From Macrostomum lignano (Eukaryota): 64,000 bases of DNA. The stretch lies in the NCBI GenBank assembly GCA_002269645.1, contig NIVC01000773.1:1-64000 (forward strand), read 5' to 3'. Under the pieces are notes generated by a model that was not told the DNA's origin, made no database searches, and saw only the letters and a program-made list of their open reading frames with translations. This document shows, piece after piece, positions 412 through 3,500 of this stretch (its first letter is position 1; each line of letters opens with the position of its first letter). The translations under genes were made by a program, and so were the position numbers.

Positions 412-539
412 GGATGAGGACAATGATCTCAAGTCGCGAATTCGTCAGAAATTGACGCGCGAATCGGACGACTTCCTGGGTCAAACATTGATCGAAGTGC
501 GCACCCTGTCCGGAGAGATGGACGTTTGGTACAACCTTG
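412..539 (+). CDS. unc-13: unc-13 C2B exon variant A (128 nt)
   Basis: AG at 410-411 and GTAGGT at 540. Encodes (W)[42 protein letters not shown]. Confidence 0.93.
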
Positions 540-3500
540 GTAGGTTGGCGGAGAGACCTTCGAGAGAGCGTGTCAGGCGGGAACCCGGCCAGTTTGATGC
601 TGTCTACCACTTCTCCTTCCGACTATTTAGAATTTAAATTGCTGCAAAATCAGGCCACTCAAACATGATAAAAATTGATAAAATTCAGCTTCAAGGCCGG
701 TGTTCCCGCCTTTATTCTTTGAGTCTCCACTGCCAAAATAGGAAATCAGAAAACCCAGAAAGAGGTAAAGACTTTAAAGCACCGGATTGCACAGAAAATT
801 GTAGTTTTAACACCTTTAGCACCTGCAGCACCAACCTTTCTTGTGCCTGCACCGACTATCTAGTACGTCAGTGCACATAGCAGAAACAAAATCAAGTGTT
901 AGAGCCGTACAAACCCGGCTAAACCAAGATCTCTCGAACTCTATTTGTCTACTTTGTCGATGCCATTATTCAATGTTTTCGTGTTTCCGAGTCTGCTGTT
1001 AGCTTAATCAAATCTGGTGATAGAAGACCTCGTCGATTGGTCGCTTTGATTGTATTGACGTCTTGCATTGTCGTGCCGATGAAAAGCCTCGCTGTCGCAG
1101 TGTGCACTGCCTGTACAACTAGTCCTTAGGCCTGTCCTGGCTATTTGTAACCTCCAAGACTTATTCGGAACAAAATGATGAACTGTTTCTGTACTTTAGT
1201 ATCATTGTGATCTTTACGTGGGTAAAACATGTACGTTAGGCACCTATTTTCATTTGTCGTCGATGGATTTTCGGATTTACCTGTAACTTTAAATGTTGTC
1301 GTTTTTGGAAGACGAAATGGCAAATTTTCAAAAAAAATCTGAGTAAACTACTGTTAGTATCTTTTAACAGTTAAATCGTTACTTTTTCACGATAAACATT
1401 AATTGAGATAATCGTGCTGAAAATCAAAAAAGGGACGAGGACAATGACCTGAGATCGCGGATCCGGTCAAAGTTGACCACCGAATCGGACGATTTTCTCG
1501 GTCAGTTGCTGCTGGAGGTCAGCAAGCTGTCCGGCGAAATGGACGTCTGGTACACTCTGGGTAGGTGCGGCTGCGGCCGTCTCAGAGACGGGGAACCGAG
1601 GCTCCGGGTCCTGGCAGAGTGGCAGAGTGGCATGATTTATTATTAGACAATGCCGATGGATAAACCGCGCATTTATTCGCCGCTTGTGTTTCATGCTTGT
1701 CCGACGAATACACGCATTATTATATAGACTTTCCTCTGGGATTCGAACCCGATTCGGTCAGCCTTGACTCAACACGGGGCTGCATGGATATTGAAGTCTT
1801 AAGGACTTATTTTCAAAATTTAGTTAGGAAAAGCGAATGAGATTTGATTTCAATTGAATCATTATGCAGCAAAATCAAACGGTTCTTTAAGAATAATTTC
1901 TAGTTTTTAAATATTAATAAATACAAAACACAAGTGAACTCTCTAAAGTAATATTTACTAGTTGAAGTAAATTTTTCATCTTTATACAATTTTAAATAGG
2001 TTATTAATGTTGTTGATTAACTGTTGTAACTTCTACTTACTTAATTAGTAAGCATCACTTGAGTATATACGTGTTGTTTTTTCAACTTAATCGAATTTCT
2101 TTTATTCATTTCTCAAAATTGTATATCTTTCAATTTCAAGCGCAATTTTGCACTTTATAACGATTCTATTCAATTTGTTTAAATTCTTATTTACAGAAAA
2201 ACGAACGGACAAGTCGCTCGTCTCTGGCGCAATCCGATTGCACATCAGCGTAGAGATCAAGGGCGAGGAGAAGGTGGCGCCCTACCATGTGCAGTACACC
2301 TGCCTGCATGAGGTGAGTCCGCCTATTGACTGCAATGATCTTACCTATCTTCAATTATCCTGTATCCATTTCCACAAATCGAATCTGTAGAACATGTTCC
2401 ACTACATGTGCGAGACCGCCCGAAAAGAGGGCAAAGAGGAGGTGCAACTTCCCAAAGCGAAGGGCGAGAATGCGTGGAAAGTTTATTTCGAAGCGCATAT
2501 GCAAGAAATTATTGAAGAGTTTGCCATGCGCTATGGCATTGAAAGCATCTACCAGGCTATGACGTGAGGGCCAAGACTGCTTTAAAATCTTGATTTTATT
2601 ATTTCCAATTTGAAGAACTGAATCCACCACCCATTTCTGAAGCGCAGACCCAGTCCCAAGCCGGCACCCGCCACCCCATTTCTCTAGGCTGAAGCGCAGA
2701 CCCTGTGTCAAGCCGGCACCCGCCACCCCATTTCTCGTAGGCTGAAGCGCAGACCCAGTCCCAAGCCGCCACCCGCCACCCCATTTCTCGCAGGCTGAAG
2801 CCCAGACCCAGTCCCAAGCCGGCACCTGCCACCCCATTTCTCGCAGGCTGAAGCCCAGACCCAGTCCCAAGCCGGCACCCGCCACCCCATTTCTCGCAGG
2901 CTGAAGCCCAAACCCAGTCCCAAGCCCATATAGGTAGATTTAAATTATGAGCCACCACAGCGTTAATCTGGATCTATTCCAAACAAATATAATTAGCGAA
3001 AACCCTACTCTTTCAACAGTCACTTCTCCTGCTTGACGACAAAATCGATCAGCACTGGCGTGCCCGCAGTGATGTCCACCCTGCTAGCCAATATCAATGC
3101 ATTCTACGCGCACAGCACTGGCACAAATGCCGTTAGCGCCAGTGACCGTTTTGCCGCCTCCAACTTTGGCAAAGAGAAGTTTGTAAAGCTGCTCGATCAG
3201 CTGCACAACTCTCTACGCATCAGTCTGTCGGTTTACCGAAATACTTTCCCAGCTTCTCAAAAGGAGAAGCTGCAAGATCTGAAATCCACTGTGGACCTGC
3301 TTACAAGCATTACATTCTTTCGCTTGAAAGTCCAGGAGCTTAGCAGTCCTCCACGAGCCAGCACAGTACTGAAAGAGTGCGCGTTGAACTGCATGAAGAC
3401 GACTTACCAATTTCTTTTCGAGAACTGCAACGAGCTGCATCATCGCGAGTTCCAGGATGGTGGCGGCGGAGGTGGCGGAGGCGGAGGCACCACCGGGGGT

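Follow-up and report, generated by a model that had tools for sequence, protein, structure and literature searches.

The unc-13 locus and its tandem exons

The DNA considered here, referred to as the window, is a stretch of 64,000 nt from the free-living flatworm Macrostomum lignano (assembly GCA_002269645.1, contig NIVC01000773.1, positions 1–64,000, forward strand). Positions 1–8481 (+) cover two-thirds of an unc-13 (Munc13) gene, the 3′ part, coding for the second half of the C2B domain, the MUN domain, and C2C. In the C2B part of this gene, two homologous exons of 128 nt, here called A and B, follow one another in tandem. The tandem pair is confirmed as an observation. It probably represents a single C2B loop-3 exon present in two copies, of which each mRNA uses one, giving two UNC-13 isoforms.

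A preliminary description of this DNA had assigned the gene to unc-13, and protein comparisons support the assignment. The closest proteins to the window model in UniRef/UniProt are M. lignano unc-13 predictions (92–96% identity), and the window region aligns to the C2B domain of rat Munc13-1 with E=1e-87. Near-identical proteins of M. lignano contain PF00130, PF00168, and PF06292 and show the C1–C2B–MUN–C2C architecture of the family. A hand-built model of 982 residues translates without internal stops; it joins exons 104–144, either 412–539 or 1433–1560, 2197–2312, and all exons of the 2391–8481 region listed below except the 27-nt micro-exon. Two further copies of the locus, about 95% identical, are present in the same assembly: L006 (NIVC01001100.1) and L009 (NIVC01000460.1), with window positions 1–12000 compared. 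The exon–intron organization, with the variability among these three copies, is as follows:

103–144 (+): upstream constitutive exon, C2B; codes (F)ECHNFSDRIKVRV and the TG of Trp756 (143–144)
145–411 (+): intron between the upstream exon and exon A; 8.6% variable sites among the three copies
412–539 (+): exon A, 128 nt; encodes C2B loop 3, the helix, and the strands after it in A-type (ancestral-like) form
540–1432 (+): intron between A and B, 893 nt; 2.2% variable sites among the copies
1334–1663 (+): longest invariant block (330 nt) in the 2.6-kb alignment of the three copies; exon B with 99 nt on its 5′ side and 103 nt on its 3′ side
1433–1560 (+): exon B, 128 nt; B-type alternative; 0/128 variable sites in the three copies
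1561–2196 (+): intron between exon B and the downstream exon; 7.4% variable sites; last 34 nt conserved with paralog 2
2197–2312 (+): downstream constitutive exon; codes (E) plus 38 residues; invariant in the three copies, tblastn match
2391–8481 (+): rest of unc-13 to the stop (MUN, C2C), translating without stops; exons 2391–2563, 3020–3901, 4040–4715, 5545–5691, 6062–6088, 6784–7012, 7778–8033, and 8181–8481

The upstream exon has the borders cag/T...TTTG/gtaagt, is matched at 98–145 by a homolog peptide in tblastn, and is identical in the three gene copies. Further downstream in the gene, the 27-nt micro-exon 6062–6088 (KSATLKKSS) is seen in UniRef models and may be alternative. An unc-13 intron holds a tandem array at 2637–2926 (a 53-nt unit repeated 5.5 times, 94% matches), and a second array, with units of 51–52 nt, lies at 5178–5398.

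Reading frame of the exon pair

Exons A and B have the same phase and the same borders, ag/G...G/gtaggt, the first G completing the TGG codon of Trp756. They agree at 92 of 128 nt and 34 of 42 residues; 15 of the 42 codons are identical, 19 differ synonymously, and 8 are replacements. The nonsynonymous divergence (dN) is about 0.13 and the synonymous divergence (dS) is saturated. A tblastn search over the 64 kb finds exactly two copies of the exon.

Since 128 is not a multiple of three, joining A to B, joining B to A, and omitting both all lead to premature stops. The A+B frame reads ...WYNLGTRTMT*, with the stop after seven codons; B+A also ends prematurely; and skipping both gives ...RVRV*, where TG+A forms an immediate TGA. 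A full-length protein thus needs exactly one of the two exons, and transcripts carrying both or neither would be expected to go to nonsense-mediated decay. Homology, equal length and phase, canonical splice sites, and incompatibility of joint use, which are among the marks of a tandem-duplicated mutually exclusive exon cluster, are found here.

The exon coordinates, 128-nt lengths, phases, GTAGGT donors, and peptides of the preliminary description were re-derived identically. Its argument that A+B shifts into a stop, that neither exon yields TGA, and that one exon is therefore obligatory is borne out by translation of the joined frames. It had placed the upstream TG outside the window; these two bases in fact lie inside, at the end of exon 103–144.

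The protein segment encoded by the exons

Both exons align to D757–L798 of rat Munc13-1, with the exon boundary at W756/D757 (numbering anchored on D705, K706, D711, and K720). This segment takes in loop 3 of C2B, the helix within it, and the two strands that follow, in keeping with the earlier proposal that the exons encode loop 3. The Ca2+ ligands D757, D759, and D775/D776 are present in A and B alike, so retention of the loop-3 aspartates, also noted before, can be read directly in both translations. The loop-1 aspartates (D705 and D711, in GKDKTGTSDPY) are coded upstream of the window and are seen in a near-identical M. lignano protein and in L006. From A to B, eight residues change (rat numbering): K763R, Q768S, R772T, T781L, I783L, R786S, T787K, and N797T. 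As a sequence pattern, the helix is kept in both exons, with hydrophobic L762/I766/L770 and basic K/R763, R765, R767, and K769. Against the Pfam C2 model, the A form scores 89.3 bits and the B form 88.7 bits, practically unchanged. Over D757–L798 the exon lines up residue by residue with the rat Munc13-1 C2B domain (PDB 3KWT/3KWU, 6NYC, 5UE8; Shin et al. 2010, cited in PMC8648301 and PMC8691950), and both versions retain the Ca2+ aspartates and the i/i+4 spacing of hydrophobic residues in the helix.

Selection on exon B

Judged by its substitution pattern, exon B is under strong purifying selection, as is exon A, and is not a decaying copy. Between the B exons of paralogs 1 and 2, dN is 0.083 and dS is 0.97, a dN/dS of about 0.09. 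In a neutral simulation that placed 36 random substitutions in exon A, none of 100,000 replicates kept an open frame with at most eight residue changes (P<1e-5). Among the three copies of the locus (window, L006, L009), exon B has no variable site in 128, exon A has four, all synonymous, and the introns vary at 2–11% of sites. Purifying selection on B had been suggested in the preliminary description, which named a dN/dS near 1, or absence of B from relatives, as signs of a decaying duplicate. The ratio lies far below 1, and B is present both in the M. lignano paralogs and in the distant flatworm Paragonimus.

The conservation extends beyond the coding sequence. The invariant block 1334–1663 reaches into the introns on both sides of B, and between the window and L006 alone the substitution-free stretch runs over 1183–1663. 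Regulated alternative exons often have conserved intronic flanks, and the flanks of this block are candidate splicing-regulatory sequence. The whole intron 540–1432 varies at only 2.2% of sites among the three copies, compared with 7–11% for the introns on either side; between gene copies it is about 3.5 times less diverged than these (2% vs 7–10%; window vs L006, Fisher P=1.5e-7), which could reflect either regulatory constraint or gene conversion.

These data bear on the possibility that exon B is an unused, decaying duplicate, a pseudo-exon, and that A alone is spliced. Every transcript-like M. lignano model uses A or skips both exons, and the acceptor tract of B is A-rich, not pyrimidine-rich, as would suit a pseudo-exon. 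In paralog 2, however, it is exon A that has the A-rich acceptor, so this is not a defect specific to B. The open frame, intact splice sites, low dN/dS, simulation result, and invariance in three copies, together with the retention of B in Paragonimus and its role as sole exon in cestodes (see below), make a pseudo-exon highly improbable.

Gene copies, paralogs, and other flatworms

At least three diverged paralogs of unc-13 occur in Macrostomum lignano, two of them 74% and 69% identical to the window protein, and each has an A and a B exon. In paralog 2 (locus L005), A lies at 407–532 and B at 1723–1848 (128-nt span 1722–1849), with length, phase, and splice sites as in the window. The A–B intron is of variable length: 893 nt (window), 1190 nt (paralog 2), 494 nt (Paragonimus), and 123 nt (the bivalve Mytilus).

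The existence of three copies of the window locus at about 95% identity fits the hidden polyploidy of M. lignano, a hidden polyploid according to PMC10468722. Near-identical copies in such a genome might suggest that the tandem pair is an assembly artefact in which alleles or homeologs were collapsed side by side. But the A–B arrangement recurs, besides the window, on three separate contigs of GCA_002269645.1 (L005, L006, L009) and in other species, and the bases of A and B are 28% different, against about 5% between gene copies. An artefact is therefore extremely improbable.

Among parasitic flatworms, the trematode Paragonimus heterotremus (locus L004) has an upstream exon, an A-type exon at 17977–18102, a B-type exon at 18597–18722 (128-nt span 18596–18723), and a downstream exon, all with canonical sites; order, length, and phase of the pair are as in M. 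lignano. A gene model of P. westermani includes both exons, and one of P. skrjabini miyazakii includes B only. The cestodes Echinococcus and Dibothriocephalus have a single exon of B-type, nearest to Paragonimus B; the Echinococcus exon shares 82% of nucleotides with it and differs at four residues. Schistosoma mattheei has a single A-type exon and no assembly gap where B would be. From these single-exon lineages, each exon type is evidently able to serve alone.

The flatworm B exons have a common signature: R763, S/T768, and a non-basic residue at 772. K763, Q768, and R772 are found in every A-type exon and in nearly every other animal sequence examined, with the exception that S768 also occurs in Lamellibrachia and Priapulus. 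In a neighbour-joining tree the B exons group together with 50% bootstrap support, from only 42 positions. Because the B-specific residues are common to flatworm B exons and these group together, the comparison indicates that the duplication predates the split of Macrostomorpha and Neodermata, that is, of free-living and parasitic flatworms.

Transcript and gene-model evidence

Annotated M. lignano models treat the exon pair in several ways. PAA82660.1 (Mlig_3_7 annotation) contains A only, and UniProt A0A1I8G3Z4 also uses A. PAA72286.1 skips both exons, joining the upstream exon straight to the downstream exon, and this junction is reproduced base for base on L006. The protein begins MRSSTLSATIFPIESKFEFEKRTDKS, which corresponds to the previous and upstream exons read out of frame (L006 6001–8250). 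A real transcript behind this model would mean that exon A is not constitutive. A0A1I8HM34, from a window-type copy identical to the window here, includes both exons by reading into introns, and A0A1I8IAL3 and A0A1I8HVR6 (paralogs 2 and 3) contain an A-GR-B fusion. The both-exon UniProt models are regarded as predictor artefacts. Models with B only exist in Paragonimus, and an exon swap is annotated in the bivalve Mya arenaria. Public flatworm models are thus systematically mis-annotated at this site: both exons are fused, both are skipped, or one is picked arbitrarily.

The A-GR-B fusions raise the question of whether a single mRNA might hold both exons in frame. Splicing at the donor's second GT (GTAG/GT) would extend A by 4 nt, and the product would carry a 44-residue internal duplication of C2B. 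The predicted proteins of paralogs 2 and 3 have this form, and the GR joint reads as the exact product of the shifted donor. Yet these models are automatic and come from an older assembly, and A0A1I8HM34 solves the same problem differently, by intron reading, which is typical of a predictor forcing two exons together. A second GT at +5/+6 is generic in consensus donors, and the A donor of Paragonimus, gtgggc, has no such site. Lineages with a single exon function normally. A duplication of three strands and a loop would also disrupt the C2 beta-sandwich. In-frame double inclusion is accordingly very unlikely.

Another alternative holds that exon B serves mainly as a 'poison' cassette: the A+B stop would lower unc-13 expression through nonsense-mediated decay, and no second isoform would be made. 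The stop seven codons into the A+B frame suits this idea, the frame-shifted model that skips both exons implies that unproductive splicing occurs at the site, and conserved intronic flanks fit a regulatory cassette. A poison cassette needs no conserved protein, however. Exon B keeps 34 of 42 residues, the Ca2+ ligands, and the lineage-wide B residues, with its dN/dS of about 0.09, and a B-type exon is the sole coding exon of cestodes. There is little likelihood that B acts mainly in this way.

How exclusivity could be enforced

The reading frame, at the least, enforces exclusivity, and known splicing mechanisms were considered in addition. Docking-site/selector pairing, as in insect Dscam1, gained no support: no convincing conserved complementary element was seen beside both exons. 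Outside about 10–35 nt bordering the exons, the introns of paralogs 1 and 2 do not align (for paralog 2, intron 1 was only partly covered in this comparison), the only inverted repeats, of 71–76%, are AT-rich, and duplex energies do not differ from those of shuffled sequences (z −0.9 to +1.3, a crude test). Steric hindrance has no support either, the 893-nt A–B intron being far too long. U2/U12 incompatibility is likewise unsupported, as the donors gtaagt, gtaggt, and gtaggt are all U2-like and there is no (A/G)TATCCTT motif. A special role for the second GT of the gtaggt donor was discarded because GT at +5/+6 is ordinary donor consensus. An Rfam scan of 1–9000 gave no hits.

Exclusive use of A and B to make two isoforms is well supported by comparative evidence. 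Several observations weigh against it. No B-only M. lignano model was found in a search with the 982-residue B model or in cluster listings, though the protein collection searched seemingly lacks M. lignano RNA-seq assemblies, so that this absence is weak evidence. A search with the peptide of the upstream exon, B, and the downstream exon, restricted to targets of about 0.9–1.75 times the query length, returned only A-like fragments of other phyla and no M. lignano fragment, and is uninformative on B expression. Nor did the introns of paralogs 1 and 2 show conserved pairing that might enforce exclusivity. Gene conversion between copies could also account for the low divergence around B. Finally, the differences between A and B are mild, with a net charge shift of one and Lys at 769 in both forms.

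A parallel exon swap in bivalves

Alternative versions of the same exon also occur in bivalve molluscs. In Mytilus coruscus, two exon copies lie in tandem, 123 nt apart, and models of Solemya, Mytilus trossulus (X5), and Magallana gigas (X5) use the second exon type. In Mya arenaria, two sets of RefSeq isoforms from one gene, X8/X10 and X14/X3, are distinguished only by which of two 42-residue versions of the exon, equal in length, they carry; they are identical over 860 residues before it and over the stretch after it. The gastropod Lottia has a single copy of the exon. The bivalve isoforms resemble the flatworm case in that the homologous exon, of 42 codons and the same phase, exists in two swapped versions. 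Unlike the flatworm B exons, the bivalve alternatives lack the signature R763, S768, and non-basic 772, and they form their own groups in the tree. A common origin of the flatworm and bivalve pairs was therefore rejected, with the tree, the diagnostic residues, and the single-copy state of Lottia all speaking against it; from these comparisons the bivalve duplication is probably independent.

The alternative exons of the two phyla change some of the same positions. R772 and R786 are invariant in all A-type exons examined, and alternative exons repeatedly replace one or both: flatworm B exons have T, S, or A at 772, with S or N at 786 in Macrostomum; the Mytilus and Magallana alternatives have T at 786; those of Mercenaria and Dreissena have P at 772 and A at 786; and that of Mya has A at 786 only, with R772 kept.

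Relation to known alternative exons

The preliminary description knew of no earlier report of this arrangement. This holds as far as the literature is concerned, where no description of mutually exclusive or tandem-duplicated exons in unc-13/Munc13 was found; the arrangement is not unique, however, as RefSeq already annotates alternative isoforms in bivalves, in records for which no publication was found. We know of no alternative exon at this C2B site in vertebrate Munc13. In vertebrates, C2B diversity comes instead from the separate genes Unc13a/b/c, and fish have no intron before D757.

According to Craxton (2010, PMC2823689), C2 domains of invertebrate Syt1, Syt34, and Esyt2 came to be modified by mutually exclusive exons on several occasions; the same paper names Munc13 only as a Doc2 partner. 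In Syt1 (e.g. C. elegans snt-1), Syt34, and arthropod Esyt2, as here, homologous tandem exons, the same or nearly the same in length, rewrite a portion of a Ca2+/lipid-binding C2 domain in a membrane-trafficking protein. The present case differs in concerning unc-13 and a loop 3 that carries the Munc13-specific amphipathic helix. The unc-13 pair is thus a further case of C2-domain exclusive exons, in a different and functionally central protein, and an unusually old one.

Exons 5a/5b of vertebrate SNAP-25 offer another comparison: they are a tandem mutually exclusive pair that differs by a handful of residues and tunes release. Unlike the unc-13 exons, they affect the SNARE motif/palmitoylation region and belong to a vertebrate gene, and their developmental regulation has been shown experimentally.

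Other features of the window

Downstream of unc-13, the window contains further coding and repetitive elements. A Ty3/Gypsy-type retroelement at 35333–38993 (+) has open reading frames for a zinc-knuckle gag, an aspartyl protease, reverse transcriptase/RNase H, and an integrase C-terminus; these are split over different frames, so the element is probably degenerate. A Kelch-repeat exon, KLHDC2/KLHL20-like (E=1e-30), lies at 45974–47268 (+) and has a GC content of 61%. An ADP-ribosylglycohydrolase family gene (PF03747) has two exons, 56063–56644 and 58932–59312 (+). A minisatellite with a unit translating to SVMLARLAIHSIPS is present at 20892–21461 (+) and, about 29 kb away and in opposite orientation, at 50362–52257 (−). 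Other arrays are found at approximately 15.6–16.0, 17.7–18.3, 33.3–34.5, 44.2–44.6, 53.7–54.2, 59.3–60.7, and 62.2–62.7 kb.

Functional reading and significance

Ca2+ and phosphatidylinositol 4,5-bisphosphate (PIP2) exert their effect on vesicle priming and short-term plasticity at the C2B domain of Munc13. According to PMC8648301, the amphipathic helix of loop 3 becomes inserted into the membrane and touches lipid head groups through its basic residues, and the R769E mutation severely impairs priming. Both exons have Lys at position 769, the counterpart of this literature-tested residue R769, so the difference between A and B is subtler than loss of a key basic residue. It is plausible from the residue changes that B retunes the membrane-binding face, with one basic residue fewer. 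Loss of the basic residues at 772 and 786 would weaken or retune the attachment of the C2B polybasic/PIP2 face to the plasma membrane, and this in turn could alter vesicle priming or release probability. Exon B would be spliced in a regulated fashion, probably cell-type-specific. The preliminary description had proposed such a cell-type switch, with an isoform whose sensitivity to phosphoinositides or Ca2+ may be altered.

The loop-3 helix and nearby basic residues have so far been probed only by engineered mutants. A natural loop-3 pair, conserved in flatworms and with a bivalve parallel, suggests which positions evolution tunes, namely 763, 768, 772, 781–787, and 797, and the A and B forms are two ready-made variants for liposome-binding and rescue assays. 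Macrostomum lignano is transgenic-tractable, so isoform-specific reporters and knock-outs are feasible. More tentatively, the pair may be an ancient switch, kept in all M. lignano paralogs and in Paragonimus and paralleled in bivalves, in which convergent loss of R772/R786 sets priming and release neuron by neuron. This wider possibility is rather less likely than the existence of two isoforms itself. If true, it would represent a natural, convergent tuning of release in animals that did not diversify Munc13 by separate genes as vertebrates did.

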